This document shows, piece after piece, positions 3,498 to 64,000 of a stretch of 64,000 nucleotides of DNA. Origin of the DNA: Ginglymostoma cirratum (Eukaryota); assembly GCA_024137785.1 (NCBI GenBank), contig JAHRHZ010000084.1, forward strand, positions 7,093,573 to 7,157,572, read 5' to 3'. The notes under the pieces are model-generated. The model did no database searches. It was not told the origin of the DNA and saw only the letters and a program-made list of their open reading frames with translations. The first letter of the stretch is position 1, and each line of letters opens with the position of its first letter. The translations under genes were made by a program, and so were the position numbers.

Positions 3498-4329
3498 ATG
3501 ACACGGTGTCATGTTATTAGATTCTTGCCCCACATATTCATTTCCACAGTTAATTTCTTCAAAGTGAAATGGACGGCCACTCGTTTATAATCTACCGGAG
3601 CAACCTGAAGTTTGCCAAAGAGCTAGGGCTGCTGTGTCAAGAGTTGTGATGTTAATTTGCCGGGGTATCAAGAATCAGATGCAGAACTCTCACTCAATAT
3701 TCTGAATTCCACTAGAATCCTGGCTCTGGATTTATTTTGGGAGATTGCGGCAATGGGGAGAAAAAAGTCACAGCTTAGTACTATGGCCTTGCGACTATCT
3801 CTTCATAATAATGTGTTTCGTGTGCATTGAGGTCTGTAAGAGTCCTTGGGAAATGCACGAAATTCCCATCAATTTCACATATGGCAGCTATATCACCAAT
3901 ATCATCAAGGTGACAAAAGTATATTTTATTCTCAACAGGATGTCATGAACTCGCTTTTGAAATATCTCGGTCTGTGCCAGAGGCAGAAGAGGAAACAGAT
4001 TTGTTCATTGCAAAATCTTATTACCAGGAGGAGATAAAAAGAAATGACCTGCATACAAATGTATCGCCCTCCAAAGGATTCACAATCATGAAGTACTTTT
4101 AATGTTTTGACAACTGTTGCAGTGCAAAAAAAAATGAAAGACAAGTAGCAACATAATGAATGACATGGACAACAATCGGGAAAAAAAAACATCTCTGAAT
4201 TATATTGGTCAGAACACCAGAAGAGCTTCTTGTGGCATGTGGACAATACCTATTAAAAGGAAGTATGAAAGTCATAATTCAGAGTAAAAGACGTTTTTAA
4301 ACATGATACCTTTTTCTAACAACTGTTGG

Positions 4330-8179: not shown

Positions 8180-8194
8180 GAAGAGGAATCGCTT
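8180..8194 (+). promoter_or_regulatory. Candidate ETS/PU.1-type site (GAAGAGGAATCGCTT) upstream of the leader exon
   Basis: GAAGAGGAATCGCTT is identical in all three copies (8180, 44648, 62353) while the flanks differ; function is inferred only. Confidence 0.35.
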
Positions 8195-8565
8195 AGGTGA
8201 AGGAGCTGGCACACTGCGGCCTGAAATAATATTTTCGGTACTAAACTACCGATGAAAGGTGAGTGTTGACAAAGGACGTCTTTCGAACGCCGTGTCCCTG
8301 TGGTGACTGAAAACTAAACAAGATTGTTGAACTTCTCGTGGAAATGTATCAGCGGGAAGTTAGGAGGGGACTCCGACCTAACAAACTCCTATGAAGAAGT
8401 ACAACCATGTCCAATACGCTACATTAGTCATATGATAAGTGATGTCATAGTCTCGCTTTTAACATATTTATCTATGAGACGCATTGGTCTCACCCGACCC
8501 AAAACCACTCAGAATACTGCCCGCGCTTACAGCAAAGCACTCACTTTTTTTTTCTCGGTTGCAAT

Positions 8566-8620
8566 ATGTCGGCGAGAGCAGCGTTTCTGTTCATGACTCT
8601 TCTGATCATGCCTTGGCCAG
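8566..8620 (+). CDS. Copy 1 leader exon, MSARAAFLFMTLLIMPWP (signal peptide)
   Basis: ATG 8566, hydrophobic core, CCAG|gtact phase-1 donor; 55-nt length conserved in copies 2 and 3. Confidence 0.85.
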
Positions 8621-8830
8621 GTACTCTTTAATGTTACCATGTGCCCTCTTCGAGTAACTTAGACTGTCTTTCATATTTACAGCTACTGCATTACAAATTT
8701 AGGTGCCCTGTTTCTCCAATCCGATGCGTGTGATTGTTCTTATTTTTTTTCTTGTATTTTACTCCTCTGTTGTTTTTCTTACCCTGCTGTCTACAACTAA
8801 TTTTTCTTTATTTTACTTATTTTTTAATAG

Positions 8831-9136
8831 TCACTAAAGTAACTTCGAGCAAAGTAGATCAGTTTCCGAAACTTTTGAAGGCAGTCAGAGGTGACAATGT
8901 TTCCATCTTCTGCACATTTCCCATATTTGAAGATGTTCCTGAAGTATTTTGGTGGAGACGCAATGAGGAATCTTTTCTGGGACCCGACAGCAGAAAGCGA
9001 TTTCATGTCCAGAAAGGAAGGGGCTCACTTCATGTTCTCAATGTCACTATCGCTGACTCCGGAATGTATTATTGTAAAATAAAACATCAGCAAACTATCA
9101 TTGCAGCTGGAAGTGGCTCTTTGCTGACAGTGTGCG
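8831..9136 (+). CDS. Copy 1 Ig V-set exon with in-exon J-like G strand
   Basis: Polypyrimidine-tag acceptor and G|gtaagt donor; 306 nt, phase 1-1; B-strand Cys (IFCTF), C-strand Trp (FWWR), DSGMYYC, GSGSLLTV. Confidence 0.95.
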
Positions 9137-9474
9137 GTAAGTGATACTGTACAAGGGGCAGAAAACGTCTTCAGCTGTTTTGTGTAATTTATGTGGCCTG
9201 CGATTTTATAATTCGAGGAAAATCCAGTGAAAGCGAATTCGCTCCATAGAGTCAGGGGGATCTCTTCCCCTTTGATTTTGTTGTTCAACGGGCTTTGATT
9301 CATTTTCGCCTGTTTTGCGCCATTTCTCAAGATCAATTCCACCACTCATTGTCATTATGACATTGCACTGTGCCGTTAATATAATGCGTGCAGAACCGGT
9401 TGATAACGCTTCAATACAGTGAAACAGCATAACTGTTTGAATTCTGGGGAGAAATTAATTTTTGGCTAGAATCC

Positions 9475-9940
9475 TGTAACAAGAGTAGGTGTTACTGGCG
9501 AAATTCAGAAGGGCTGGCAGCATCTGTGTGAGCGAACGTTTATAGTCCAGTGATCCTTCTTCAGAACGGTTCTGACGAAGGTCACTGGACTCAAAATGTT
9601 AACTGTCTTTTCGCTTCACAGGCAGCCTCAAAATAAGGGGGAACGTCTCCGTTCAAAGAGTTGTGAATCCGTGGAATTACCTGCCGTTGAAGCAGTTAAG
9701 GCTATACCTTTGAATGTTTTTAAGACACGGATAAGTCGATTTTTGAACAGTAAATGAATTAATCGTGATGGTGAGTGGGCGTTAAGTCGAGCTCGGTCCA
9801 CGAAAAGTTCAGCCATGATGTTATTCAATGGCGTTGGAGGCTCAACGGGCCAGATGACCTATTCGTGCTCCTATTTTTTCTGCTGTTACGTTCCGATGCT
9901 GCCAGACCTGCAGAATTTCCCCAGTAATTTATATTTTTGT
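9475..9940. mobile_element. Inverted Penelope-like terminal repeats with a nested CR1 3' fragment (~9627-9890, +)
   Basis: Hairpin agtccagtgatccttcttcagaac/ttctgacgaaggtcactggact; CR1 3' motif gttgtgaatccgtggaatt; orthologous copies at ~46050-46520 and ~63640-64000. Confidence 0.65.
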
Positions 9941-11749
9941 GTCATGTGGTAAAATGCTCGGTTTACCTCTTACCAAAATAAAAGTGCTAAAATGCGACAG
10001 TAGAAACAATGTTGACGCAAAATCAAAAATGCTGCGTATTTTGGAAAGTTTGAAGCAAAAATACAATTTACTTAAAACGTGTGTGAACATCTACTGAGGT
10101 AATACGAACATAAGAATTAAAAACAACAGTAGGCCATTCGTCCCTCAACTCGACTCAGGCACGCAATCAAATTATGGCTGACTCGTTTGCGGTCTCAACG
10201 GCGCTTTCCCACCGACCGCGGTACCTTTGGATATCGCTGTAAATCCAAAACAGTTAACGTTTCAGGTCATAATCTTTCATAAGAACAAATATAACAGCTT
10301 ACACATCATTTTTAAAGAAGATTATGAAGACCACCTAATAGTCATCCACAATATGCATTGATTGTAAATTCAGGTGAATAATAGCATGCCACAGCCACTA
10401 TTATACAACCAACACAGGGTAACTTTTCGACCAGCAAATTGCTGATCGAAACATTCTGTACCAAACTGTTCAAAAGTGGAGATGGATTGCAAGGGAAGTT
10501 AATCCTGGGGATCAAAGGAATAGAATAAAATCGGACAAACAGAGTTGAGATACAGTCCAACCATGACCTAAGTGAATGGCAGAGTGAGCTGTGCTGGTGT
10601 GGATCCGATGGATCATATGTCATACTTCAACATTGAAGGGATTCTAAGATTCTATTAGTGAGAGAAATTCAAAGGCAGAATCGCCAAGCATTTTGACTGC
10701 GCATTTTCCAATACTGATATTCTCCAAACGCCATTTCTTACACAAATGAATCGCATGATCCAGTGAGACGACAAACGTTGATCTTGCTCTAAACGCTGGA
10801 TTCTATACCCCGTTATGAAGTTTCCACGACAATGAAGTTACCCACTTCCTATGTGGCTCGCCAACTGGACTTTCTGTAATACGCGCACAACAGGCATCGT
10901 GAATGAAGGACGGCACCAAACATAACTAAAAGCCTCTGCGCTCCTGTGTTTGTCATGTATTATTTAGATGCAATGGTACCCATGATAGGACACCAAGATA
11001 ACACGCATATTTTTGTTCTCCGTGAGAGTTCTGTGGTATCTAAAGCAGGCCTGAGGGGGAAATGGACGAGTTCTCAGACTTTGCAGGTAATAAAAACCCG
11101 CGTAAATTTGGAAATGAATGAAATATCGACCTTAATAATTCCCTCGTAATAAAATATATAAAAAAAACAGAGAACAGATGTTAAGAATATTGATTGTAAT
11201 AAACAGCAGAACAATGCAAACCCTGCAATATTATACCCAGCTGAAAACTGATTGTAGATCGAGGGGCCACACGTTCGCTTTAGTAAATAGTTAATGTAGA
11301 ATTGATTTTGAAAGGGGGTTTTCAGGCGAAGACGGGAATATGAATCAATTGTTGTTTCAGGCTCAAAGGGTCGAATAGCCTTCTGAATGGAGCGGACTGC
11401 TTCACCTCCCAATTCGTATGTTTCCTCCAGGTAGAATCTCCTTCAAGGAAAAAAAAACTACGCCCAACAAACTGAATGCACTTTCAGAAGGGCAAAACCC
11501 TCGGGATTATGTTAAGACCCACACTTTATCAAAGCTTTTCCTTCCGGGCTCATCCTCGCTGTGCATTGTTTGAAAAACATCCTAACATTGTGTGGTGTGT
11601 TTTTACAAACAAATGCAAAGACCAAGGTTAAAATACGATGACAAAGAAAACTATTGTCGTATTAGGAATAATGTGCGACGGGGTTACGGTGTGGACGGGA
11701 GGAAACAGAAGAGAATGTGATTTTTTTAATGTTTTACGTTCTGTTATAG

Positions 11750-12046
11750 TTCCACCAACCCACTTGACAATCATCCCCGTGGAAGGAATTTCAGGAAATT
11801 ACTTGAAATTCGAGTGTGAAACCTCTGCCTTTTATCCGGAGGATTTAGGCATCACCTGGCTAAGAGATGGTGTCAATCTTCAGGCTGGAATAGAGACTGT
11901 GAAAAACAAGACCGTGGATGGGCTTTATGAGGTTACTAGTTCATTGGAAGAAGCGCAGCCTGTGCGAGGCAGTGTAATTTATACCTGCCTGGTATCTCAT
12001 GTTTGTCTTAAGGTGCCCGCTAGCGTCAGCTACACCTTTTATCGCG
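11750..12046 (+). CDS. Copy 1 Ig C1-set exon
   Basis: tag|tt acceptor and G|gtaag donor; 297 nt, phase 1-1; FECETSAFYPEDLGITWLRDG, DGLYEVTSSL, YTCLVSH are C1 signatures. Confidence 0.95.
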
Positions 12047-13234
12047 GTAAGGTTCAAAATGTTCCCACTTGGGAGTTGGGGTTTCTAATGGAGCCGGGAT
12101 GTGATTGTGGAAGACCTAAATGTGTATCTTTTATGGCACTGAAGTAGCTGTAACTCGACGATATCTTGTAAATGTGACCGGTGTTTATTCTCAATGCAAC
12201 TTATTCAAGCAGTGCATGTATATTGTTTATCCTGTTCAGCTAATCTCCGCCAACAACGTCTTATGTTGCTTATACCCTAAACTTGGAAAATTCTGGCCTT
12301 TTAATGTCTCCCTATGTCTTTCAATGTTTAAGACACTTCTTTAGCCTTATTTCTCTCTGTTCCAAGACTACTTTATGTTTGGCTGATAATGCTTTGTGAA
12401 ATGTCTTATAATTATTTGTAGCAAGGTTCAAGGTGCAGCATAATTGCAAGTTGCTGTTATATATACTAAAATTTGCAGTCGGTGTTGTCTGAGAAGGCTG
12501 GAAAAGGGTGTCATAAAGCATACAAAATCCTTTCAGATCTTGAAAGGGTAAATGAGGGAAGGATATTTCCCCTGGCTGATGGTCGAATCAGAAAACACAG
12601 TTTCAAAGTAAGGGGCAGGTCACTTAGGACTGAATTGAAGAGGGATTTCTTCAACCAGAAACTTGGGAATTCTACACCACCCTCCCATTCTCCCCACCCC
12701 GACACTCCGCCAGACTGCCGGAAAAGTTCGGTTACCAAGAATATGAATACCAAATCGACAGAGTTCCAGACATCAAATGATATGTAATTAGCGTGAGACA
12801 ATCACACTTACTAAGTTCGGTAGCGCGTGCCCGAAGATCCCAACGTCTATCCCGTTCCTGTTGTTATGCTCCTTTATTACTGCGGTTAGGAAGTAAAAAC
12901 ATTGCCAGATCTTGCAATCGTTGTGCATCTGTCTGGTTTCAGACATTGAGTAATTAAATGCAAATTCCTTTACACATAGTAAACAACCCTCTGGTACAGC
13001 GAGAAGTTTCCCGCGCGTCTAACTCATGAAATGCGTTTTCTCCATAAAATGCATTGCTGAGCTGCAATCGATGTCCACCGATGCACATTAAGGCTCTTGT
13101 ATAGCTGTTCCCACCGAAATTAAAACGCTCCAAATTGGCTATCAGTGGGGTTATCCTGGGAGACATCTATGCAATTTATCATCCTGCGCATGATGCTTTG
13201 CGCATGTAACTCGCTCTGTTCCACAATTGTTCAG

Positions 13235-13363
13235 GTCCATCAACTGTTGATCCTGTAAATGAAGTTATCAATCTTCCCATGATCGTTGGATGTGCAGGAG
13301 GGGCATTGGCAATGTTACTATTCATAATATATTTGGTGACACTGAAATTGAAGGCATCGGCTG
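13235..13363 (+). CDS. Copy 1 stalk + transmembrane exon (GPSTVDPVNEVINLPMIVGCAGGALAMLLFIIYLVTLKLKASA)
   Basis: ttcag|gt acceptor and G|gtaag donor; 129 nt, phase 1-1; uncharged hydrophobic stretch followed by KLK. Confidence 0.9.
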
Positions 13364-13937
13364 GTAAGAGTCTTTCTTATTTCGCTGGGTACTTTTTATT
13401 TCCTTAGATCCAGCGTAAAAGCATGAGGGCGGGTGACGCATCAAGGACTGCGACTTCACATCGTGGAGATGGGAGTCTAACGTAGATGTGAAATGCAAAT
13501 ATTTCGCTTTCTTTCCGAACTAAACAGTCGGTTTATTCACGTCCATGTTGCTACAATCGAAATTATTGTTCAGTTAGAGTCCAGTTCCTAAACACGAAAC
13601 TTTGTTCCGTAGATTTTGACTTTCGGCATTAAAACGGATGTTTTCGAACTGACGACTAGATATACACATTCTCAGATTTTATTTCCGTTGTAATGTTGTG
13701 GTGTCAACGGGCCGCCGACTCACAATTGGCACTATCACACAGAGACAAACTCTACACCATTGGGTGTAGCGCGATGTGAACAATAAGCAGGTGAAAACAC
13801 TGCGCTGCTGAAACCTTCGAGCTGTAGGTTTTCGTACTATATTAAAAAGTACATGTTTCTAGCAGCGAAGGCATGACACTAGATTTGGTGATACACCGAT
13901 TTTGTTACTGACGGTGCATTTCTGTACTTTCTATTAG

Positions 13938-13981
13938 GCAAAGGGAGAAAATCGGTGGAAGCAGGTCAGAATGACGTTCCG
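13938..13981 (+). CDS. Copy 1 cytoplasmic exon 1 (GKGRKSVEAGQNDVP)
   Basis: ttctattag| acceptor and |gtaatg donor; 44 nt, phase 1 to 0; same length in copy 2 (50763-50806). Confidence 0.8.
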
Positions 13982-14939
13982 GTAATGCGACATTATTCTT
14001 TATATTCCTAACAAAAATGGTAGAGAAGGTGGGCCCATAGGAAGGCTAGCAATGAATTTTATATTCAGTGGAAATTGCTTACTTTTTTTCACAGAACATA
14101 GAATTCTATCGCACGGGATGCAAATCCCGCGCCTCTGCCGTCTATGTTTTGATTCAATTGGTTCCACTCTCACGGTATTTATCTGTTTATCTCATTTTTC
14201 GTTTCAATACAATTCATTTTTGAAGGTTCCTGTCTAATCTCTTTCTGTCACTCTGTGTTTGTGGGCAGCTCCCTGTAATGAGCTGCAGCAAAAAAAGGTC
14301 TCCCCAGATGACAGAAGACCCTTCCAGTCTCGAAGACCTTTCCGTCTTCCTAATGTAGTGCCCGGAGTGGTTCACAATACCTCACGTCTTTCGGTGCTTT
14401 ATGCTTTTGTTAGCAGCGCTGACGGCAATCTGTGTGGCAGTGGGCCGGGAAGGCGGGTTGAGGGGGAAGAGAGAAGAGGGGTGGAACAATGGATGTGGCA
14501 GTGTTGCGGGAGAGTTTTTGACAGGATTCTAATTGTTGGTCGCAATTTAGAGGATGTAAATTTTCCAGAAGTGTAACGTGAGCAGACTAAGTCTTAGCTG
14601 TCAGATCTTCTAATCAGTTAGGCTAATTATGGAATAAGAAAACTGCCGTCGACACAACAAGGTCAAAGAGGGCTCAAGATAAACCAGCTAATAGTAAATA
14701 CGTATTATTCGTTCGCTAGATGTTAAAATGTAGATGAATACATTAAATGCTCTGGGATTCATCTTTAGATCATTACTCCGCACCACATTGGTGAAATATT
14801 AGAGGCAAATAATTGAGAGTTGACAAAATAAAATTGCAACCATGTTTGATTGTTCACTGTCTACATACTTAACCGTGTCAGGTGCAGTTCCAATCGGTGA
14901 TGGCTGGCTTCACAATCAAACTCGCTGCTGTCATAGTCA

Positions 14940-15420
14940 TAGAGTCACAAAGTCATAAAGCATACAGCACGGAAACAGAACCTTCAGTCCTACCAGACCA
15001 TACAAATTTAACTAGAACCACCTTTCTGCTCCTGAAACAAATCCCTCCAAACATTTCCTATTCATGTACTTACGTAAATTTCTTTTAAACGTTGTAGTTG
15101 TACCCACATCCACTACTTCCTCAGGAAGTTCATTCCATACCCGAACCAGTGTCTAAAAAAATTAACCCCATGTACTTTCTTTTTACATGTCTCTCCTCTC
15201 ACCTTAAAAATATGCCCCCAATCTTGAAATAACTATCCTAGGGAAAAGACAACTGCCATTAACGCTATCTATACACCTCATTATTTCATAAACTTCTATT
15301 AGACCGCCTCTGAACTTCCTCTGCTCCAGTGAAAAAAAAAGTCCCAGCCTATCCAGCCTTTCTTTATAACTCAAACCTTTCATTCCTGGCAACATCCTGA
15401 TAAATCTATTCTGAACCCTC
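14940..15420 (-). mobile_element. CR1 LINE 3' fragment
   Basis: MLPGMKGLSYKERLDRLGLF..LEQRKFRGGLIEVYEIM is the typical CR1 C-terminus. Confidence 0.85.
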
Positions 15421-15450
15421 TTATCAATATTTCATATCTTATTTTCCTAG

Positions 15451-15520
15451 CTGAGACAAAGACTGACTGAAGAAAATGTCACGTATGCTAATGTAAACTT
15501 GAAAGCCAAAAAAGTTCCAG
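15451..15520 (+). CDS. Copy 1 cytoplasmic exon 2 with ITIM VTYANV (15478-15495)
   Basis: ttttcctag| phase-0 acceptor; LRQRLTEENVTYANVNLKAKKVP; CCAG|gtaaga donor. Confidence 0.8.
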
Positions 15521-15654
15521 GTAAGATAGAAGAATTGTCAAGTATAAAGTATCCAGGTCAATATTATGATAATGGAGTTAATTTTTTTTTTTGAAAAAGA
15601 TACCATACAGTAGGAAGGGAAGGGTCTGTTGTAATTTTGACTTTATGGAGTAGA

Positions 15655-16170
15655 AGATGCAGTGGTAATCCAGATGTCAAGGTTAATACTATGGGGATAC
15701 GGGTTCAAATCCCACCAGAGCTGCTAAATGAGCTTAATTAGAATCGATAAATCTAGAATTTAAAGCTAGTCTCAGTAATGTCGATCATATGAATTGTCAT
15801 TAATTGTTATCAGAAAAGTTCCCTTTTTCTTTTATACAGGACACTGGTGAGAACACTGGTAAACTGTATACTTTACTGGTGACCATTTTGACGGAGGAAT
15901 ATTAACGTATTGAAAACAACACAGAGAACGTTTACTGGACTAATACTTGAAATGAGTAGATTCCATTACGTGACCTTATCATGATAAGACATGGATTCGC
16001 TAAGGGACTTCAGGGAAGGAAATCTGCCATCCTTGAGTAGTCTGCCCCACATGTGTGTCCAGAGCCACAGCAATATGGTTGACTCCCAACTAACTTCTGG
16101 GCAATTAGGGATGGGCAATGAATGCTGACCCGTCCAGTGATGCCACATGTTGTAAATGAATGAACAAAAA
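15655..16170 (+). mobile_element. tRNA-derived SINE sharing its 3' tail with the 545-1478 LINE family, interrupted by a CR1 piece (~15815-15965)
   Basis: B-box GGTTCAAATCC; tail gggcaattagggatgggcaatgaatgctg; same nested structure at ~52555-53070. Confidence 0.7.
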
Positions 16171-16174
16171 ATAC

Positions 16175-17900
16175 ATAACCCATTCAGACCATCGAGTTTA
16201 CTCCACCATCCAATGAGATCAAGATTGATCTGACAAACCTCTTCGCAAAGTTCCTGCCTCTTCCCTATACAATTTCATTCCTTTACTAACTAAAAATCTA
16301 TTTTAGGCTCGAATATTCTTAATTACTTAACTGAGTCAACCTTTCATAAGAAATAATTCAACAAATTCACTACCCTGTCAGAAAAGAAGTTCCTCCTCAT
16401 CTCTGTTTTAAATATGCAACCATTTAGTCTGATATTATACCCTCTGGTCCTTGACTCTCTGACATAGGAAACTTAATCTCCACATCTATCCTGTCAAGTC
16501 CCCGAAGAATCTTGTATATTTCAATCAGGTCACCTCTCATTCTTCCAAATTTCGATGAGTACGGGTTCAGCCTATTCAATCTCTCCTCATAAAAGACTTC
16601 CTTCATTCCTGGTAACAGCTCAGTGACCCTTGGCTGGACTGCCTCCAGTGCCAATACATCTTTTCTGAGATAAGGGGAAGAAAACTGTTCACAGCATTCC
16701 AGCTGAGGCCCTAACTATTGCCTGATGCAGTTTTGGCAAATACCCCTACTTTTATATTCCATTCCCTTTGAAATGAAGGCCCATGTGCCTTCTCTAAAAT
16801 CTGCTGAAAATAGGTTCTAACTTTTTTTTTGTGACTCATGCATGAGGAATCTCAAATCCGACTGTTCCATAGCTTTCTACTGTCCTGAATTCAAACAATA
16901 TTCATCTCCTCAATCCTTCCTGCGACATTGCATTACCTCACTTCTCCCACATTACATTCCATCAGCCAACTCTTTGTCGCTTAATGTAACCTGCCTATAT
17001 AATTCGAAAAAAAACTTTTTATGTCATCCTCACATCTTACCATCGCAATTTCATTAATGTTATCCGCAAAATTGGCCATTGTGCATGCACTTTCTGCATA
17101 CAAGTCTTCAAAATATATATTTGGAAAAATTGTGGCCCTGCCACTAATCCCAATGGTACTGAAAGAGTTCTAGATTTTCATTCATAAAATGCCCTGTCCC
17201 CATCCTAATTCTCACTGCTCTAGTAATTAGCCAATGCTCTTTGGATGTTAATGACCCAGAGACCGTGGTCTTTTATCTTATTAAGTAAGCTAATGTGTGG
17301 TATTTAAGCAAATGTTTTCCTGAAAATCCCAATATGTTACATCCACTGCTTCTCCTTTGTCTGTATTCCTTTTAAACTCCTTAAAGAATTCTAGTAGGAT
17401 TGTCAGGCATGACGACTCCTACATGAATCCATGCTGAATCTGCTTAATATTATGAGCTTCCAAATATTCTGCATCATTTATCACAGACTGATGCATTTCC
17501 CCAGTAATCAATGTTCTGCTAACTGGCCTATTACTGTCTACTTCCCTTTTAAATAAAGATGTTAGTATGGCAATTTTTTAAATATCTAGGAGGTTTTTTT
17601 CATAATCAAAGGATTTTCAGAAGATTACTACTGGTTCATTAAGTACTATGGTTACTTCCTTTGATATCCTAGGATGCTTCCAATCAGGTCCAGGGGACAT
17701 ATTAGTCTTATACCCCATTCGTTTCCCCGCTCCCTTTTCTCCAGTGATAGTTATTGTACTTATTTTCACTCCTCCTTTTACCCTTGAATATTTATTAATT
17801 TGGAATTTTCGCGCTGTTTTCCACTGTGAGAAGTATTCATTCAACTGTTCTACCATTTCCTGTTTCCCCATTATTCTTTTCCTCCACCTCATTTTGGGTT
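16175..17900 (-). mobile_element. Degenerate CR1 LINE
   Basis: ALEAVQPRVTELLPGM...GRMRGDLIEIYKIL; SPGPDWKHPRISKE. Confidence 0.85.
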
Positions 17901-17919
17901 CTCTCTCCACTTTTCTAGG

Positions 17920-18330
17920 CTGTAGGCTATAGGATAGGTATCCTCTGGAGTTTAGAAGAGTCAGAGATGACTTAATTGAATCATATAAGATTCTGACAGA
18001 CTTGACCAAGTGGATGTTGAATCTTTCCTTTGATTGGGAGAATCTAAAACTAGAATTCATAGTTTAAACATAAGAGATCGTCTATTTAAAGCAAACGAGG
18101 ATTTTTCTTTTCTTTCATGGGGCTATGTATCTTTTGAATTCCCTTCCTCAAAAGGCAGTAGATGCAGAAACTTTAAGTTTTTTTTAAGGCAAGGGTGGAT
18201 AGATTCTTGATTACCAACCAGATGAAAGGTGATTGAGGTGGGGGTTTTGAGGAGCAGGAATGTAGAGTTGAGGATACAGTCAGATCAACCATGACATGGA
18301 ATGATGGCGCGAGCTTGAAGGGCCGAGTGG
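17920..18330 (+). mobile_element. CR1 LINE 3' fragment
   Basis: ctggagtttagaagagtcagagatgacttaattgaa (LEFRRVRDDLIE) followed by CR1 3' UTR. Confidence 0.75.
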
Positions 18331-19116
18331 CAGCCAGACACTCAATTCAAGACAATTAGCGACAGGCAATAAACACTGACATTGTCACTGCCATCCTTCT
18401 GCCATGAAAAAAAAAAGACAAAGTCATGCCACTGTTCGGGAATCGACGTCTCTTCTGCCTGTTTCATCGGAAATAGAAATCAGGGGAGATATCAAACGGG
18501 CTGCGGCTCTTATCATCAGATTTAGGCTGGAATACAATCAAAATTATTCGTGTTCCTTTTTATGAATTAGCAGTTATAATGATGGTCCTGAGCAATAACA
18601 AAAGAAACTTATCTGGTAAAAGTGGCAAAAATGCATTTTACAAACAAAGTGCGAATTCAAGAACAATCCGCCTTACGCCTAAGCCGTCGAATCCAGCACC
18701 AGGAAAAAAAAAAAAAAATCCATGCAGGCAAAGGAGCGCACTGTCGATGAAATTTAATGTAATACCTTCAATGTCTTTTGGTACCGCACCAAACACTAGA
18801 GAATTGAAAGGTCCCAAGTTTAACCTCCCAACTGTATTGTGTCCGACCAAGACTCACCATGTTCGTCTTGGATCCCACGGATCGGAAGATCAGCAGCGGT
18901 GGGGTAAAGGCAGTTGAGATTTGTGACTTGAGGCCTCTGAATGGAATAAGCAGATCAAATTGGCTGTCACGCCTCAGAAATTGGGCCTTGAAAGGGATAT
19001 TTTGCAATATCAGCTTTCGAAACACATTTAAAACGACGGTATTTGATTCATTTGTGATTTTAATCGAAGTAATAACCTGTTTTCTAAAATGAGCAATACT
19101 GAACGAGAAGTTCAAA

Positions 19117-19246
19117 CCCGCACTTCTGCACTCACATCCCCTCCCCGCAACAGTAGCAAAGACAGAATCCCCCTCGTCGTCATCTATCACAAAAACTAAC
19201 CTCCGTCTTCAACGTATCGTTTTCCGCCAATTCCGCCACCTGCAAT
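19117..19246 (+). mobile_element. Penelope-like element coding fragment (RT thumb to GIY-YIG linker)
   Basis: Translates KDRIPLVVIYH..TNLRLQRIVFRQFRHLQ with one frameshift; absent at the paralogous site (~56090). Confidence 0.65.
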
Positions 19247-19424
19247 TTTTTACGGCACGGTTGAATAGAAATCAGAGATAGAAAACAATACCAAACTCGG
19301 TTACAATCTGAAGTTGGTAACTGTTTATCGGAAATTCCACCAAACCTTCTTAGTAAAATCTCGACTGCCTCTGGCAATAGGTCATCGACGGACTAACGGG
19401 AGATACTAAATTTTACTTTCACAG

Positions 19425-19565
19425 ACCAAGCAACGAAGCAAAGATAACAAGCTGACTTTGCGTCGTTTTCGAAATTGTCGATTCCAAAAAAGCATCAAAA
19501 CTAAACAGCAAGACAGTTCAGAAATATATGCAGAAGTGAAGGAGACAAGGAAATCGAAAAGCTGA
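19425..19565 (+). CDS. Copy 1 terminal cytoplasmic exon (phase-0 frame ends ...DSSEIYAEVKETRKSKS*; phase-1 frame gives DQATKQR*, stop 19445-19447)
   Basis: ttttactttcacag| acceptor; 141-nt open frame with a tyrosine motif; homologous to 56291-56418. Confidence 0.65.
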   Translation, partial: TKQRSKDNKLTLRRFRNCRFQKSIKTKQQDSSEIYAEVKETRKSKS

Positions 19566-19659
19566 GACTCTGAACATACTGGGAACATGGGAGACATTAA
19601 TGGATGTAGGTCCAGAGAATTTGGTTGTGCGTCATAAAATGTGTTCCAATCAAAATTAT

Positions 19660-25190: not shown

Positions 25191-25698
25191 TAAAGCTCTG
25201 GAGAGGAGATTTGTATTTTTTCCAAATCAAAAGGGTATGCCCCGGAGGGTCTTCTACTCCCGAATAGAAGCATGTTAAGTTCAAGCTCCCCGAATCTACT
25301 GCTGGTCTTTTCTACCCAAAGCGAACAGCATAATCAAATTCATCATTATGTTCTGAATGGCCTAAGCTAAGCGACGTATCGCTAACCAGTTGAAGGGACG
25401 TATCTTCAAAACGTAATTGAAAGAAATGCGCCGGTTTCTTCAAACTACAACTCCACACACGAAGTCACTAATCTCTGACACATTTCCTCATCTCATTTTT
25501 TTTTCTAAAGCCATTCAATCCGAAATGTTGGATGTCCTTTGCTTAAGACCGTCCATTTGCCTGCCATGGTCCAAAACGGTTCTGTCCTGTAGCTCGCACC
25601 CTCGGGCCTTAGTATTTCAAATATGATTAATCCTACAGTTAATTTCTACTTTTAGTTTATTTTTGAGATGCTTATTCGCATTTTACATTGGTTTTCAG

Positions 25699-25865
25699 GT
25701 AGTTTTTGCAGTCCCATCCCTCCCACCAAAGCTGCAATTAAAGGAACCAGTCATGCTGTGTTGCACATTCCCACTCTTTCTAGAGAAGTAAAAGGCAATG
25801 TTTCATCACTGGTCTCATGGCGAGGACGGGTTCCTAGACCATGGAGAAGTGAAAAGCGAAGTTAG
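25699..25865 (+). pseudogene. Relict V-exon 5' half of a diverged fourth paralog
   Basis: ttttcag| acceptor; KAAIKGT then, after a frameshift, VMLCCTFPLFLEK*KAMFHHWSHGEDGFLD, aligning to KAARGDNVSIFCTFPIF...WWRRNEESFL. Confidence 0.65.
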
Positions 25866-26150
25866 CCCCGTTGCCTTACAGTACCAAGGACCCGGGTTCG
25901 ATTCCAAACTCGGTCGATTGCCTTTGTGGAGTTTGCACATTCTCCGAGCGCCTGCGTGGGTTTCCTTCGATTGCTCAGGTTTCCTCCCACATCCCAAAGA
26001 TGCGCAGTTTACGTGGATTGGATACGCCAAATTGCCCATTGCGTCTAGCGTGGTGAATGCAGGGATAGGGTGCGTCAAGGTGGGATGCTCTGCGTATGGA
26101 CCGTGTGGTCTCGAATGTCCAAATGCCCTGCTTCTGCGAATCTATGAGCC
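25866..26150 (+). mobile_element. HE1-type V-SINE
   Basis: B-box GGTTCGATTCC plus V-domain gtggagtttgcacattctcc...gggtttcct...ttcctcccacatcccaaagatg. Confidence 0.85.
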
Positions 26151-26159
26151 ATGTAGGAA

Positions 26160-26267
26160 ATGTATGAGGTTGTCAGCACTTCTCAAGCACCAGAGCCTTC
26201 CTCCAATGAAGCTGCATTCAGCTGCCAAATGTCTCACATTTCTTTTCAGAGTCAATTACATCTTTGA
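26160..26267 (+). pseudogene. Relict C1-exon 3' half of the diverged paralog
   Basis: MYEVVSTSQAPEPSSNEAAFSCQMSHISFQSQLHL* aligns without gaps to LYEVTSSLEEAQPVRGSVIYTCLVSHVCLKVPASV. Confidence 0.7.
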
Positions 26268-27087: not shown

Positions 27088-27487
27088 NNNNNNNNNNNNN
27101 NNNNNNNNNNNNNNNNNNNNNNNNNNNNNNNNNNNNNNNNNNNNNNNNNNNNNNNNNNNNNNNNNNNNNNNNNNNNNNNNNNNNNNNNNNNNNNNNNNNN
27201 NNNNNNNNNNNNNNNNNNNNNNNNNNNNNNNNNNNNNNNNNNNNNNNNNNNNNNNNNNNNNNNNNNNNNNNNNNNNNNNNNNNNNNNNNNNNNNNNNNNN
27301 NNNNNNNNNNNNNNNNNNNNNNNNNNNNNNNNNNNNNNNNNNNNNNNNNNNNNNNNNNNNNNNNNNNNNNNNNNNNNNNNNNNNNNNNNNNNNNNNNNNN
27401 NNNNNNNNNNNNNNNNNNNNNNNNNNNNNNNNNNNNNNNNNNNNNNNNNNNNNNNNNNNNNNNNNNNNNNNNNNNNNNNNNNNNNNN
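27088..27487. other. Assembly gap (400 N)
   Basis: Run of N. Confidence 1.
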
Positions 27488-45021: not shown

Positions 45022-45076
45022 ATGTCGTCGAGAGCAGCGGTTCTGTTCATGGCTCTTCTGCTTATGCCTTGGCCAG
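45022..45076 (+). CDS. Copy 2 leader exon, MSSRAAVLFMALLLMPWP
   Basis: 55 nt, CCAG|gtact donor. Confidence 0.8.
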
Positions 45077-45287: not shown

Positions 45288-45593
45288 TCACTAAAGTAAT
45301 TTCGAGAAAAGTAGATCAGTTTCCCAAACGATTAAAGGCGGCCAGAGGTGACAATGTTTCCATATTCTGCACATTTCCCATATTTGAAGATGTTCCCGAA
45401 GTACTTTGGTGGAGACGCAATGAGGAACATTTTCTGGAATCCGACAACAGAAAGCGATTTCATGTCCAGAAAGGAAGGGCCTCACTTCATATCATCAATA
45501 TCACTGTTGCAGATTCCGGAATGTATAATTGTAAAATAAAACATCAGCAAACTATCATTGGAGCTGGAAGTGGCTCGTTGCTGACAGTGTGCG
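45288..45593 (+). CDS. Copy 2 V exon (open frame; DSGMYNC, GAGSGSLLTVC)
   Basis: 306 nt, intact splice sites, no stop; missed by the ORF track. Confidence 0.9.
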
Positions 45594-48550: not shown

Positions 48551-48847
48551 TTCCACCAACCCACCTGACAATCGTCCCCGTAGATGGAATTTCGGGAAAT
48601 TACTTGAAATTCGAGTGTAAAACGTCTGCCTTTTATCCGGAAGATTTAGGCATCACCTGGCTAAGAGATGGTGTCAAAATTCAGACTGGAATAGAGACTG
48701 TGAAAAACAAGACCGTGGACGGGCTGTATGAGATTACTAGTTCATTGGAAGAAGCACAGCCTGGGCGAAGCGGTGTAATTTATACCTGCCTGGTATGACA
48801 TGTTTGTCTGAAGGTGCCCGCTAGCTTCAGCCACACCTATAATCGAG
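48551..48847 (+). pseudogene. Copy 2 C1 exon with premature stop (YTCLV*H)
   Basis: 297 nt, intact splice sites, TGA at 48796-48798 replaces Ser. Confidence 0.9.
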
Positions 48848-50069
48848 GTAAGGTTCAAAATGTTCCCATTTGGGAATTAGGGTTTCTTATGGGGCCTGAG
48901 TGGGAGTGGTGGACCTTAAATGTGTATTTTTATGGCAGTGAACTAGCCCTGACTCGAGGATATCTCGTAAATGTACCGGTGTTTATTCTCAATGCAATTT
49001 GTACAAGCTGTGCGTGAACATTGTTTACCCTGTTCAGCTAATCTCTGCCAACACCGTCTTCAGTTGCCTGTACACTAAAATTGGAAAATTCTGGCCTCTT
49101 AATGTCCCGCTACGTATTTCTATGTTTAAGACACTTCTTCATCCTTATTTCTCTCTGTTCTAAGACTACTTTATGTTTGACTGATAAGGCTCTGTGAAGT
49201 GTCTTAGAATTATTTTTAGCATGGTTGAAGGTGCAGCATAATTGCAAGTTGCTGTTATATATACAAAAATTTGCGGGCGGTGTTGTCTGAGAAGGCTGGA
49301 AAAGGGTGTCATAAAGCATACAAAATCCTTTCAGGTCTTGAAAGGGTAAATGAGGGAAGGATATTTCCCGTGGCTGATGGTCGAGAATCAGAAAACACAG
49401 TTTCAAAGTAAGGAGCAGGTCATTTAAGACTGAAGTGAAGAGGAATTTCTTCAACCAGAAACTTGGGAATTCTTCACCACCCTACCATTCTCCCCACCCC
49501 GACACTCCAGAAAAGTTCGGTCACTATGAGTATGAAATATCGAGATCGACACAGTTCCATACGCCAGATGATACGTAATTATCGCGAGAAAATAGCGCTG
49601 AGGAAGTTCAAGTATACTATACTGGAATGGTGGCGCGTGCCCGAAGATTCCAACGTCTAGCCCGTTCCTGTTGTAATGCTCCTTTGTAACTGAGGTTAGG
49701 AAGTAAAAACATTGCCAGATCTTCCAATTGTTGTGCATCTGTCTGGTTTCAGACAATAAGTAATTAAATGCAAATTCCTTTACACATAGCAAACAACCCT
49801 CCGGTGCAGTGAGAAAATTCCCGCGCATCTAAGTCATGAAATGCGTTTTTCTTCATAAAATGCATTGCTGAGCTGCAATTGATGTCCACCGATGCACATT
49901 AAGGCTCTTATATAGCTATTCGCACCGAAATTAAAACGCTCCATCTTGGCTAACAGTGGGGTTATCCAGGGACACATCTTCGCAATTTATCATCCTGCGC
50001 ATGATGCTTTGCGCATGTAACTCGCTCTGTTCCACAATTGTTCACATGCATCAACTGTTGATCCTGTAG

Positions 50070-50174
50070 GTGAAGTTATCAATCTTCCCATGATCGTTGC
50101 ATTTGCAGGGGGGGCATTGGTAATGTTACTATTCATAATACATTTGGTGACACTGAAATTGAAGGCATCAGCTG
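50070..50174 (+). CDS. Copy 2 TM exon using a shifted acceptor
   Basis: Copy 1 acceptor CAG is CAC here; tgtag|gt 24 nt downstream is in frame; EVINLPMIVAFAGGALVMLLFIIHLVTLKLKASA. Confidence 0.7.
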
Positions 50175-50762: not shown

Positions 50763-50806
50763 GCAAGTGGAGAAATTCGACGGAAGCAGGTCAGAATGAC
50801 GAGCCG
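50763..50806 (+). CDS. Copy 2 cytoplasmic exon 1 (GKWRNSTEAGQNDEP)
   Basis: 44 nt, AG/GT intact. Confidence 0.75.
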
Positions 50807-52294: not shown

Positions 52295-52404
52295 CTTAGA
52301 CAAGGACCAACTGAAGAAAATGTCGCCTACGCTATTGTAAACTGGAAAAGCAACAACGTTACCTTCAAGTACAGTCATAAGGGAGAACACACTATCTATT
52401 CCAC
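52295..52404 (+). CDS. Copy 2 cytoplasmic exon 2 (ITIM VAYAIV ... HTIYS)
   Basis: LRQGPTEENVAYAIVNWKSNNVTFKYSHKGEHTIYS; 40 nt longer than in copy 1; AC|gtaag donor (read-through gives T*). Confidence 0.7.
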
Positions 52405-55205: not shown

Positions 55206-57499
55206 GCTTGCTCAGTCACTCAATCCAAGGCAATCAGCGATGGGCAACAAAACTGACATTGTCACTACCATCCTTAAGCCATGAAAAAAAGAGACAAAAT
55301 CATTCCATCGTTCGGAAATCAAAGTCTTTTCTGACGATTTGGTCGCAAACCAGGGTAGATATCAAACAGGCAGTGGGCTCTTACCATCAGTTTTAAGCTG
55401 GAATACAAACAAAATCATTTGTGTTTTCTTTCATAAATTAGCAGTAATAATGATGGTCCTGAGCAACAACAAAATAAACATACCTGCTAAGAGTGACAAA
55501 TATCCACTTTACAGACAAACTGCGAAATCGAGAGCAATCTGCCTTACACCTACCCTGTCGAATCCAACAGCAGAAAAAATTAGAAATCCAGACAGGCAAA
55601 GGAGAATTAGTAAGAACTGCCGATGCTGGAGTCAGAGATAACACAGGACCGAGCGCACGGTGCTCCTCCAGCTCCAGGCAAAAGAGAGTACTGTCTATGA
55701 CACTTAATGTAATACCTTCAATGACATTTGGTACTACGCTACACGCTAGGGAATTGAAAGGTCCCAGGGTTAATCTCTAACTGTATTGGATCCGACCATC
55801 TCAACCAAGACTCACCGTATTCGCCTTGGGTCCCAGGGATCGGAAGATCAGCAGCTACAGGGTAAAGGCAGTTGAAATGTGTGACTTGAGGCCTCTCCAT
55901 GGAATAAGCAGATCAAATAGGCTGTCACGGCTCAGAGACTGGGGCTTGACAGGGATATTTTGCAATATCAACTTTCCAAACACATTTCATACACCGGCAT
56001 TTGATTCATTTGCTATTTTAATAGAAGTAATAACCCGTTTCCTTAAATCGACAATGTTGACATTCCAACTCATTTTGCGAGAAGCTCAAATTAGAATAAC
56101 AAAAGTTTTTACGGCAAGGCTGCAGAGTGGGGAGAAATCAAAGATGGAAAACAAAGCAAACTCGGTTAAAATCTGACGTAGATAACTGCTGAACGGAAAT
56201 TCCACTAAACTTTTTAAATAAAACATTGACTGCCTCTGGGAAGGGGTCGACGACGTACTAGCGGGAGATCCTAAATTTTACTTTCACAAATCAAGCAAGG
56301 GTAACAATTTGACTTATGTCGTTCTGTTAATTGTTGACTCCAAGCATCAAAACCTAAACAGCAAGACATTTCCGCATTATACGCAGAAATAAAGGTGAAA
56401 AAGAAAGTGAAAAGCTGAGACTCTAAATATATTGGGAAGATTGTATATATTAATTGATGTAGTTCCAGAGTATTTGGTTATGCGTCGTAAAACGTGCTAC
56501 AATAACAATTAACATTCATTGCAGTCAGGCTAAGAACCAACTATCTAGAATATCTGTGTGCATTGGGAAATGTTAGATGGAAGAATCGTTGGGAGGTTGA
56601 TTACAAAACCAATCCAATATCGGGAGCATGCCACGCCCAGGGCAAAACTTCCGAAACCATTTTTAACTTGTCACAAGTGGAAAACTAACTTCAGACCAAA
56701 TGTTCTGTTTTTCAAACATGCACTTGTTTGAGCGTTTAGATATTAACATTCAGTTTATAGGTAATTTGTTGAGCTTCACACACATCATCTAAATTCCGCT
56801 GGAGGACTGGTTTCTATTTGCGCCTAACGCAATAATTCACTAAACATGATCTCTGATATGATCTTCTAGGACACGGGATAAGTAAGCAGTGGCCACTGCA
56901 CCCAAAACTCTACCACTTGCACCGAAACCGTTTTTTTACGTTATCCGTGTTTAATGCCTGCTGTTTTCAATAAAGAAACAACCAAACCTCACATGCACAG
57001 GAATACTACTAAGATCTACGCTTAAGGAGAAATCATTTATAAAATGTACCGGAAGCCCATCCACTGTACCACTGTAAACAAAATATAAGATCATATTGGA
57101 TTCAAAACCAAAATGGAAACTGAAACTGTTCCCCAGGAGGGAGAGTGAGTTGGAGAAAACAGGCCAGAAAGAATCTATTAAAACGCAGGAACAATGTAGT
57201 TTTTGCCGCTTAAGGAAAAGCCTAGTTAGAGCCCAATCCCAGAGATCCAATAGTATCAACATGAACTTTGGCTCATGCCCATCTGACTGTCGTCCAGATT
57301 TGTGCAGTTTTCATTGTGATTTTGTAACACTTGCCAGTCCAAGAAGGTACAGGCACAGGCTTCTGCTTAGAGGCGCAATTGCAGAACGAAGTATAATGCA
57401 AAGATGCAACCATGGTTCCAGCATTGTCAATCAATTTATTTCGAGCCGCATGATCGTTTATGAACCGAAAAAGGTCTACAGATTTCAGGAACAAGTCAC

Positions 57500-61200: not shown

Positions 61201-64000
61201 CCTATTTCTGAATCAGCAGACCACAGCCCAAATCCTAATGACGCTAGTGCTGTATCATGACAACTCTAAACAGGTTGACTAGAAATTAACAAGACCCCGG
61301 CACCTTTCCTACTCCACATCAAAATGAACAACCGGGATTACCTCAAAGATAATTAAGGATGGACAATAATCCTGCCTTGCCCTTAATGCTCATAAACTGT
61401 TTTTAAAAGGCAAGCAGAGGGAACGACTCACAGTTTAGTAATTGGCAAGAGATGAGAAATTTAATTGAAAGTAAAGTATGAGGAGTGTTTCCAATACTTT
61501 GAAGATAGGAGGACAATAGTACATAAAATATCAGGCAGATAAGTTCAACTAAACATGAACTAGCCTCAGCCTGGACACTTGTGCGCAACCCTAAGGGAGG
61601 TCAAGGCCTTAGAAAGGATGTTGCAAGATATTTATTGGAATGATATTTGAGGTTAGGAACTTCAGTGATTTTAAGAAAGTGGTGCTATTCTCTTTGATCA
61701 AAATAGTTAGCTGCGGTCAAGAGTACAGAAAAGTTTTCATGGTATAAATGGCCATAAAAAAATTTAAAGCATAAACTACTTAGGATAAACGACATCCTGT
61801 CAGAAGAGCCTGTAAATAGGCAAATTAGCAAAACACCCAGGTGCTTTTGAATTTCACAGTGGCAACGAGTTCTAGCCTAGTCCTTTCTGCTGAGAGCAAA
61901 ATTTTCGTGCGCTCCGCTGATGATAGTTTGTATCGCGATTCCTGAATAAGTTTCATCTGCTAATTTAGGTCAAAACATTCCACTCAGCAAGCTACCAACA
62001 AGCTAAACATTGACAAAATCTGGTCTTACTTTCACAAAATTCTCTATTTCTTTCCAGTCGGTTAAATGGGCGTTGACCAAGCTTGTTTCTCCTCGCGATT
62101 CCATTCCGGGTATCAACAAACACAATATCGTAACTATTTCTTGTGTATAGTGTGGACTAATAGCCCCAACAGGAAACTATTTAGAAATAAGTCTTTTCTC
62201 TTTATTTCCGGCTAAAATAAAGCTCAAACATTAGCTCTGAAATAATGAAATGGAGATGAATATAATTTTCAATCCAGTGGTTCCTGCTGGAAACTGGTGT
62301 GTTCGAAGGTCGTTAAAGATTAAGGTGGCATAAAACTCAGAGTTCTCAGGGTGAAGAGGAATCGCTTAAATAATGGAGCTGAGTACTGCGGCCTGAAGAG
62401 ATATTTTCAGCATTAAGATAACGCTAAAAAATAAGTGTTGACAAAAAAGCTATTTTTGAATGCAATGTCCCTCTGGTGACGGAAAATAAAACAAAACCGT
62501 TAATCTTCAGACGGAAACGTTTCAGCAAAGAGTTAGAAGGGGATCTTCGACCTCACAGGCTCCCACAGAGAAGTACAAGCACATCCAATTGGCCTTATTA
62601 GTCATGTGATTTCTTACGTCATGGTCTCACGTTTAATATGTTTATTTCTGAAACCTATTTGTTATCCTCATCCCCCAAGCACTCAGAATACTGCCCTCCT
62701 TTGCAGCAAAGAGTTCACTCTTTTATTTCATTTGCAATATGTCGCTGAGTGTAGCGGTTCTGATCGTAGCGTTTCTGTGTATGGCCTGGCCAGGTACTCT
62801 TTAAAGTTACGAGCTGCACTTTTAGAATACCTTAGATTGTACTTCATATTTACAACTACGATGCATTGCAAAGTTAAATTCCCTGCTTCTCCAAGCCTAT
62901 TCGTGTGCTTGTTCTTAATTGTTCTTGTATTTTACGCCTCTGTTGTTTTCTTTTTTCCTTCTCTTTCTGCAATTGGTACCACGGATTTTACTTGTTTTCT
63001 TTTGTTTAGTAGCCACTAAAGTGACTTCGAGCAAAGTAAATCAGTTCCCCAAACTCTTGAAGGCGGCCAGAGGTAGCAATGTTTCCATGTTTTGCACATT
63101 TCCCGTAATTCAAGATGTTTCCGAAGTATTTTAGTGGAGACTCAATGAGGAATCGTTTCTGGAAGCGGACAAGAGAAAGCGATTCCATGTCCAGAAATGA
63201 ATAGGCTCATTTCATATTCTCGATGTCACTGCTGCAGACTCCGGATTGTATTATTGTAAAATAAAGCATCAGCAAACCATCATCGGAACTGAAAACGTCT
63301 CGTTGCTGACAGTGTGCGGTAAGTGACACTGCACTAGGGACAGACCACTCTTCAGATGTATTGGTTGACTTATGTGATCTGAACTTTTATAACTAACATA
63401 TTAGCTTCACACTGTCGTGGGATCACTCCCCCATTGACCTCACTGTACATCGACCGTTGATTCACTTTCGCTCATTTTGCGTTATTTCCTAAGATCGATT
63501 CCACTGCTTATTATGATCACGGCATTGTACTGCGTTGTTAATGCAATGAGTATATTTTTTTGTGCAGGAAACGTTGATATTACGCCAGGATAGTGAAGCA
63601 GGGTAACTGTTTACATCTTGGGATGAATTAAGTTAATGGAATAAGATAAAGAACTGCGGGTGCTGGAATCTGAAACGAAAATGGAAATTGGTGGACAAAC
63701 TCAGCGCGTCTGGTGGTACTTGTGTGTGTTAACGTTTACAGGTCAGCGATCCTTCTTCAGGATGGTTCTGATCAAAGGTCATTTGGCTGGCAACTTTAAC
63801 TCACTTTTCGCTTTTCAAAATAAGGGGCAACAGATTTAGGACTGAGTTGAGGAGGAACTTCTTCACGCAAAGGGTTGTGAATCTGTGGAATTCCCTGCCC
63901 ACTGAAGCAGCTGAGGTTACCCCAGTGAGAGTTATATAGGCAACAATAGATAGATTTTTGAACATCAAAGAAATTAAGGGCTTTTGTGAGCGGGTCGGCA
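58280..64000 (+). repeat. Segmental duplication unit 3 (more diverged; runs off the window end)
   Basis: Colinear with ~2560-9760 and ~37970-46350. Confidence 0.85.
62739..63318 (+). pseudogene. IgSF receptor copy 3: leader (62739-62793, MSLSVAVLIVAFLCMAWP) and V exon (63013-63318) with two nonsense codons
   Basis: TAG at 63132-63134 replaces the first Trp of FWW; TGA at 63198-63200; GSG changed to ENV; splice sites intact. Confidence 0.9.

Follow-up and report, generated by a model that had tools for sequence, protein, structure and literature searches.

The first tyrosine pair in the tail of human SIRP-alpha reads ITYADLNL...(24)...HTEYASIQT, and the 'BTAM' peptide that contains it activates SHP-2 when doubly phosphorylated (PMC5589908); the same receptor has LTYADL (PMC5413580). 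The UrIg and UrIg2 genes of elasmobranchs join V and J in one germline exon that is followed by a C1 domain (PMC12227049; PDB 9dmx). UrIg2 is a non-rearranging antibody-like gene, and the paper describing it mentions neither immunoreceptor tyrosine-based inhibitory motifs (ITIMs) nor SIRPs (PMC12227049), as is likewise the case for a paper on the shark major histocompatibility complex (MHC). We describe here a 64,000-nucleotide (nt) stretch of the Ginglymostoma cirratum genome (assembly GCA_024137785.1, contig JAHRHZ010000084.1, positions 7,093,573 to 7,157,572 of the forward strand; the window, in whose own coordinates all positions below are given), in which a self-comparison revealed three tandem paralogs, partly broken and ~83% identical, of one receptor gene on the + strand. 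We consider it probable that the window represents one decaying part of an extensive multigene family that, within the reach of our searches, is restricted to cartilaginous fish. Judging from the protein sequences of its intact members, sharks, rays and chimaeras possess a cytoplasmic tail of four tyrosines arranged as two pairs.

The family was recovered with the V exon. A full HMMER scan of 1.84 billion representatives returned giant proteins with multiple immunoglobulin (Ig) domains, whose score is summed over many domains, together with single-V proteins 41-67% identical to the query; the best single-domain matches (57-67% identity) are family members. These come from the sharks Heterodontus francisci, Scyliorhinus canicula, Heptranchias perlo and Mustelus asterias, the rays Mobula hypostoma, Mobula birostris, Hypanus sabinus, Narcine bancroftii and Pristis pectinata, and the chimaera Callorhinchus milii (e.g., XP_067906043 of Heterodontus francisci, XP_062923465 of Mobula hypostoma and XP_067853494 of Heptranchias perlo). 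All 31 matches with E <= 1e-10 to the whole Heterodontus protein belong to cartilaginous fish. Most of the relatives that we examined (308-395 amino acids) have a V-C1 ectodomain, and a few are without the C1 or the V domain. For P0151, a Heterodontus member, AlphaFold2 predicts a V-C1 ectodomain with a confidence score (pLDDT) of about 90-97, a transmembrane (TM) helix and a disordered tail. Full-text literature searches yielded no published description of the family, only inconsistent automatic names: many members are called 'tyrosine-protein phosphatase non-receptor type substrate 1-like' (SHPS-1/SIRP-alpha-like) in RefSeq, and others SIRP-beta-1-like, NCR3LG1-like, tapasin-related-like, Ig-lambda-like or T-cell receptor (TCR)-beta-like. 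A search of NCBIfam, which covers prokaryotes, assigned no family. The existence of the four-tyrosine tail is thus not new, the intact proteins being public and often named SHPS-1-like.

Intact four-tyrosine tails are carried by relatives from Heterodontus, Heptranchias, Mobula (two species), Hypanus, Narcine and Callorhinchus; the Mustelus tail is more divergent, and the relatives retrieved from Scyliorhinus and Pristis are without a four-tyrosine tail. The consensus runs ...(T/V)xYAxLN(L/M)...23 residues...x(I/V)Y(S/A)Q in its first part and TK(Q/R)xxxxxxLTYAALxLxxSK(K/N)T...22-23 residues...(L/V)YA(D/E)V...stop in its second, with successive tyrosines spaced by 23, 13 and 22-23 residues. 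The original prediction had rebuilt such a tail by aligning the differently broken tails of the first two paralogs (copies 1 and 2), and the intact tails of shark, ray and chimaera relatives match the two pairs that it proposed. When we read and re-translated both copies, the six motifs behind the reconstruction, both exon lengths (70 and 110 nt) and the frames were all as described, including a distance of 23 residues between the tyrosines of copy-2 exon A. The reconstruction had hinged on an in-frame join of HTIYS to IKQ. Relatives do join ...IYSQ to TKQ or TKR in frame, as in P0065 of Mobula (...RIIYSQ, then TKRNGADKLTYAAL...TLYADV) and P0151 (...TVYAQ, then TKQRSGENQLTYAALQLADSKKTSKPKQDKSAVYAEV), with a similar junction in P0113, P0141, P0145, P0174 and P0181, and the Q that had been guessed at this point is the usual residue of the family. 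This junction, with LTYAAL and then YA(D/E)V at a distance of 22-23 residues after it, is present in intact relatives of at least nine cartilaginous-fish species.

Two further elements of the original prediction can be compared with the relatives. The 111-nt phase-0 exon proposed for the first half of the tail agrees with the protein alignment, and a Mobula isoform, P0162, lacks exactly 37 exon-A residues (the gap runs from after ...QNEEP to before TKGNG), which fits a symmetric 111-nt phase-0 exon A; the boundary in relatives is inferred from proteins and not from DNA. The second element was the motif series ITIM-ITSM-ITIM-ITIM, where ITSM denotes an immunoreceptor tyrosine-based switch motif. 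Taking I/V/L/S-x-Y-x-x-I/V/L as the ITIM and T-x-Y-x-x-V/I as the ITSM consensus, VTYANV, VAYAIV and LTYVVL are ITIMs as labelled, and the second and fourth labels hold only in part. The second tyrosine can be read as an ITSM (HTIYS-Q-I) only with the derived Ile of copy 2, relatives having Y(A/S)QT with Thr at +3. At the fourth motif, position -2 is Glu in EIYAEV and Ala in ALYAEI, so that neither fits the ITIM consensus, and sharks and rays have Ala or Glu there; SEYSEV and TEYAEI of the Callorhinchus relatives do fit.

On the reading that we prefer, family members are non-rearranging receptors organized as V(J), one C1, TM and cytoplasmic tail, the intact tail probably being encoded by three small exons (a 44-nt mini-exon, the 111-nt phase-0 exon A and the terminal exon B). 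The tyrosine pairs follow a short basic juxtamembrane stretch, the first reading (T/V)xYAxL-N-L, 23 residues and xxY(S/A)QT, and the second LTYAAL, 22-23 residues and xxYA(D/E)V. By analogy with the SIRP-alpha BTAM peptide, the phosphorylated pairs may dock the tandem SH2 domains of SHP-1/SHP-2 and thereby inhibit the cell that carries the receptor.

The family is variable in its layout. Members P0049 and P0145 are V-TM proteins without C1 that keep the full tail, and P0159 and P0160 are without the V domain. Three Heterodontus members (P0151, P0163 and P0166) have an extra block of 31 residues (TEQEFPYTTV...RTVYAQ) between exons A and B, which resembles a partly duplicated exon A and brings the tail tyrosines to six. 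Four further family members (P0017, P0080, P0091 and P0093) have a short tail without tyrosine motifs, and their TM segment ends in a conserved acidic residue and His (IVDHV, IVEHL, IMDHF, IFDHV). In the V-domain tree, short-tailed members adjoin four-tyrosine members (e.g., P0093 with P0141 and P0080 with P0113), a placement that suggests inhibitory and non-inhibitory paired receptors of the kind represented by SIRP-alpha and SIRP-beta.

Within the window, positions 1-19658 pair with 34599-56511 at ~83% identity, and the third paralog, beginning at ~58121, extends past the window end. A gene model was built for each copy from stop-to-stop open reading frames (ORFs), Pfam and tblastn with relatives, and the splice sites of copy 1 were read directly; searches were made exon by exon. 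The resulting order is leader, V(J), C1, TM, a 44-nt mini-exon, exon A and exon B, with a single C1 exon between the V and TM exons of copies 1 and 2, and the exon-by-exon tblastn matches to Heterodontus, Mobula and Heptranchias relatives are all colinear. With P0151 as the query, tblastn recovered exon B of copy 1 (E 1.6e-6), exon A of copy 2 (E 1e-3) and both pieces of exon B of copy 2 (E 5e-3 each). An ITIM-like hexamer is not significant in itself, hundreds being expected by chance in the six frames of 64 kb on a rough estimate. The tail motifs rise above this background because of their homology to relatives in tblastn and their position: in both paralogs, the tail-exon matches keep their order, lying behind canonical splice sites and downstream of the TM exon.

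The mini-exon, which the original prediction did not mention, lies after the TM exon and ahead of exon A in both copy 1 and copy 2. It was sought among AG...GT intervals with a length of 2 mod 3 that are open in phase 1, scored against the peptides of relatives, and it is the best candidate in both copies, joining the TM exon, which ends in phase 1, to exon A, which starts in phase 0. In both copies, mini-exon, exon A and exon B stand in order and encode peptides that match the family, with altered lengths of exon A. Compared with the VJ-C1-TM family of cartilaginous fish, the window copies have the same exon order, domains, tail exons and motif order, but none keeps the whole tail.

The leader exon of copy 1 (8566..8620, 55 nt, ATG at 8566, phase-1 end) was matched by tblastn to the N-terminus of P0151 (MSARAAFLFMTLLIMPWP). 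The V(J) exon (8831..9136, 306 nt, phase 1 to 1) is open, scores 3.8e-10 against Pfam V-set and is 66% identical to P0151; it carries the J-like GSGSLLTV and ends in ...AAGSGSLLTVC, with no split of the recombination-signal type. The C1-set exon (11750..12046, 297 nt, phase 1 to 1) is likewise open, with YTCLVSH, a Pfam C1-set score of 1.4e-8 and 63% identity to P0151. It is followed by the stalk/TM exon (13235..13363, 129 nt, phase-1 end; tblastn to residues 225-253 of P0151, E 4.8e-6), whose TM core is without a charged residue, and by the mini-exon (13938..13981, 44 nt, phase 1 to 0), where (G)KGRKSVEAGQNDVP matches (G)SKKDSAEAGQAEEQ of Heterodontus.

The tail of copy 1 is broken at several points. 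Exon A (15451..15520) measures 70 instead of 111 nt between its AG and GT, with VTYANV at 15478-15495 in phase 0; a 40-nt gap (equally, a 41-nt deletion from the intact exon) removed the second tyrosine and left the exon ending in phase 1. Exon B (19425..19565, acceptor AG at 19423-24) is open in the phase-0 frame from TKQRSKDNKLT to EIYAEV (19521-19538) and the TGA at 19563-65, but the codon of the third tyrosine has a +1 insertion and a -1 change lies downstream, which together scramble the ~18 codons between them (LTY...SKKASK); besides the frame shift, the third tyrosine codon itself is changed, being TGC in the restored frame. As spliced, the reading runs ...KKVP-D-QATKQR-stop and ends at TAA 19445-19447, seven codons into exon B. 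Thus only VTYANV, the membrane-proximal ITIM, is left in frame, and EIYAEV lies in the phase-0 frame of exon B, yet beyond the reach of translation. All six splice junctions are canonical, and a frame of 307 codons is open from the leader through exon A (the length is arithmetic over exon lengths), so that copy 1 as spliced is predicted to encode a receptor of 307 residues that bears a single canonical ITIM.

Copy 2 is a pseudogene: C1 contains a stop, the exon-B acceptor is gone, and deletions of 1, 8 and 4 nt shift the frame. Its leader (45022..45076) is 91% identical to that of copy 1 in blastn and was also found by tblastn. The V(J) exon (45288..45593), with boundaries placed by offset from copy 1, is open (Pfam V-set 1.3e-10 on the ORF 45269-45598). 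The C1 exon (48551..48847) contains an in-frame TGA at 48796-48798, reading LV*H versus LVSH in copy 1, and the TM exon (50046..50174) is 94% identical to that of copy 1 in blastn and also supported by tblastn. The mini-exon (50763..50806, 44 nt) reads (G)KWRNSTEAGQNDEP. Exon A (52295..52404) has 110 nt, one under 111, that is, 36 in-frame codons plus 2 nt, with VAYAIV at 52322-52339 and HTIYS at 52388-52402, and its last base is C versus G in copy 1. The exon-B remnant (56290..56418) holds LTYVVL (56309-56326) and ALYAEI (56374-56391) in different frames before a TGA at 56416-18; its acceptor AG has become AA (56288-89; CACAA, not CACAG), 8 nt are deleted after IKQ, and 4 nt are missing from the A-run that follows DSK. 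Copy 3 is also a pseudogene: its V(J) exon (63012..63314) has in-frame stops at 63132-63134 and 63198-63200, and its remaining exons, if present, lie outside the window. A blastn search with the C1 exon of copy 1 gave no third match in the window, where only ~700 nt follow the copy 3 V exon. No receptor is possible from copies 2 and 3.

The lesions were polarized with the relatives, and indels were listed from DNA alignments. We considered an 8-nt tandem duplication in copy 1 (AAGCAACG/AAGCAAAG), under which the 110-nt exon A of copy 2 would join its own exon B in frame, and rejected it: because relatives read TKQRS..N.LTY, copy 1 is ancestral here and the 8-nt change is a deletion in copy 2. 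A shared loss of 1 nt at the end of exon A (TCC-AG in copy 1 and TCC-AC in copy 2, before GTAAG) would date the frameshift before the duplication, and a 41-nt deletion in copy 1 with separate events in copy 2 takes an equal number of steps.

A possible remnant of a fourth member lies at 25627-26264 (+), where a V-exon-like start, ...PVMLCCTFPLFLEK, runs into a stop, and a C1-end-like piece, EMYEVVSTSQAPEPSSNEAAFSCQMSHIS, stands ~400 nt further on, past other sequence (tblastn to P0151, E 0.024); the two pieces are as far apart as in the protein, so that this may be a deleted or processed copy. At 27088-27487, 400 consecutive N mark an assembly gap or a masked stretch, and reverse-transcriptase-like ORFs are found at 572-1276 (+) and 35474-36133 (-).

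Divergence between the copies differs between ectodomain and tail. Across the V, C1 and TM exons, copies 1 and 2 are 0.906-0.929 identical, with 23 synonymous and 38 nonsynonymous changes and a ratio of nonsynonymous to synonymous rates (dN/dS) of 0.48 (the in-frame comparison of the copy 2 V exon covered 45293-45589); the chi-square of these changes against neutrality is about 7 (p about 0.01). Identity is 0.84 in the mini-exon and 0.80 in both exon A and exon B, compared with 0.81-0.85 (0.83) in introns, and gap openings number 4 over the 141 nt of exon B, compared with about 10.5 per kb in introns. In a maximum-likelihood tree of V domains, the three copies group together in a single clade (100/99) nested among the shark members, with copy 3 as the outgroup to copies 1 and 2 and end branches of 0.04, 0.10 and 0.17 for copies 1, 2 and 3, respectively, the last being the longest. 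Taken together, dN/dS, the exon and intron identities and the tree branches indicate that the ectodomain of copy 1 is under purifying selection now or was until recently, and that both tails have drifted.

The likeness of the family to SIRP-alpha extends over a V domain that does not rearrange and carries a J-like germline motif (G-x-G-x-x-L-x-V), a C1-set Ig domain, an uncharged single-pass TM segment and, in intact relatives, four tail tyrosines in two pairs, and it reaches the local wording of the motifs (SIRP-alpha and family, respectively: YADLNL and YATLNL; HTEYASIQT and HTVYAQT; LTYADL and LTYAAL; YASV and YAEV). The spacing within pairs is also alike, with 24 and 26 residues in human SIRP-alpha and 23 and 22-23 in the family. 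Differences are found in the gap between pairs (17 residues in SIRP-alpha, 13 in the family) and in the residue at +3 of the second tyrosine (Ile in SIRP-alpha, Thr in most family members). The ectodomain of SIRP-alpha has a V and two C1 domains, whereas copies 1 and 2 and most relatives have one C1, and the window copies as spliced are without a four-tyrosine tail, copy 1 having one motif in frame and copy 2 being broken between motifs. On paper, the receptor would work as SIRP-alpha does, but orthology to SIRP-alpha and membership of the SIRP family are unproven, one defining feature, V-C1-C1, being absent.

It is close to an even chance, if slightly below it, that the resemblance to SIRP-alpha is convergent or generic and that the family is an independent branch of antigen-receptor-like VJ-C1 genes. 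Paired tyrosines ~23 residues apart are a common docking format for tandem-SH2 phosphatases, also used by PECAM-1, PZR, Siglecs and CEACAM1. The single C1, the inconsistent RefSeq names and the restriction of the 31 whole-protein matches to cartilaginous fish point in the same direction, as do tail-only protein searches with two relatives as queries, which returned cartilaginous fish only, although the method needs shared 5-residue words and the blank is accordingly weak. In a comparison of the family profile with the PDB, IgA, UrIg2 and Fab chains scored equal to or better than SIRP-alpha (2wng, E 4.8e-26, V and C1 in one match), and a Foldseek search of the P0151 model against the PDB had only Fab light chains and TCR chains in its top 50, which gives no discrimination of SIRP kinship. 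Against convergence, the motifs share order and local wording with SIRP-alpha to a degree that exceeds the bare consensus (TAYATLNL...(23)...HTVYPQT or HTIYSQT; LTYAAL), and 2wng is the top-scoring cell-surface receptor outside antibody chains and the 'CT3' chain 7t62_B.

Other VJ-type receptors offer partial parallels. UrIg2 is the second-best PDB match of the family profile (E 2.6e-32) and shares the germline-joined VJ exon followed by C1, but its solved chain is V-C1-C2-C3 (PDB 9dmx title), whereas the family has a single C1, a TM segment and a tail with tyrosine motifs. NKp30 (NCR3), an MHC-linked receptor, also has a VJ-type V domain, and the V-TM layout of P0049 and P0145 resembles it; these V-TM family members keep the four-tyrosine tail, whereas NKp30 has a charged residue in its TM segment and is not known to carry a tail with tyrosine motifs.

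A more tentative possibility is that copy 1 is a working gene, encoding the shortened 307-residue receptor and either signalling through the single ITIM VTYANV or acting as a decoy, the three distal tyrosines having been shed while the ectodomain was selected. The canonical junctions and open frame agree with such a gene, its stop lies in the last exon, so that by general rule no nonsense-mediated decay is expected, and the ectodomain dN/dS is accompanied by a V branch 2.5x shorter than that of copy 2 and 4x shorter than that of copy 3. However, the mini-exon and exon A have diverged at the intron rate, indicating no detectable constraint on the ITIM exon (short stretches, in tails that evolve fast anyway), and the signal of constraint may partly predate inactivation. 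RNA reads add a further point against a working gene. Four runs with the same species label were mapped to 13570-19569, and depth was zero on the mini-exon, exon A proper and exon B of copy 1 in about a quarter of one polyA run of unknown tissue. Depth in the polyA run and two contig-based runs was confined to blocks at about 14970-15450, 15970-16170 and 16370-18170, which we take for interspersed repeats; in the polyA run, 98% of mapped reads continue into unlike sequence, the matches being partial. A second raw-read RNA run placed no read on the region and hence provides no test. Interspersed repeats fill the introns and are abundant in RNA as well as DNA runs of the species, their depth being in the thousands in the contig runs.

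Rather unlikely, in our estimation, is a broader evolutionary scenario in which the family is a true sister or the ancestral form of SIRPs. The two-pair tail would then have been pre-assembled in the jawed-vertebrate ancestor on an antigen-receptor-like ectodomain with one C1, and birth-and-death evolution would since have shed tail tyrosines repeatedly while the ectodomain was selected, with copy 1 as a live single-ITIM or decoy intermediate.

That the breaks are artefacts of assembly or exon choice, both copies in fact encoding the full four-tyrosine tail, is very improbable: three lesions are single-base indels in short homopolymer runs, an error kind of long-read assemblies, but the 40-, 8- and 4-nt indels, the C1 TGA, the AG-to-AA change and the two stops of copy 3 are of another kind, no alternative acceptor near 19420-19440 restores the frame of copy 1 by eye, and the tail exons have diverged at the intron rate. 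Returning to the reading that we prefer, of the window as a decaying corner of a cartilaginous-fish receptor family with a three-exon tail, some points do weigh against it. The 111-nt exon A rests on the protein alignment and one exon-skipping isoform. The single-base indels may be assembly errors, of which the longer indels, the TGA and the AG-to-AA change are atypical. The zero RNA depth on the tail of copy 1 also belongs here, as evidence neither for nor against expression.

In itself, the window adds little, its copies being decayed members of a known but uncharacterized family. What the family holds is a SIRP-alpha-style double-pair tail, conserved across chimaeras, sharks and rays on an ectodomain like that of a non-rearranged antigen-receptor chain, and the lesion-by-lesion comparison of the copies illustrates how signalling tails are lost from such receptor clusters under continued constraint on the ectodomain. 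The family thus provides concrete material for comparative immunology on the age of the SIRP/SHP inhibitory module.

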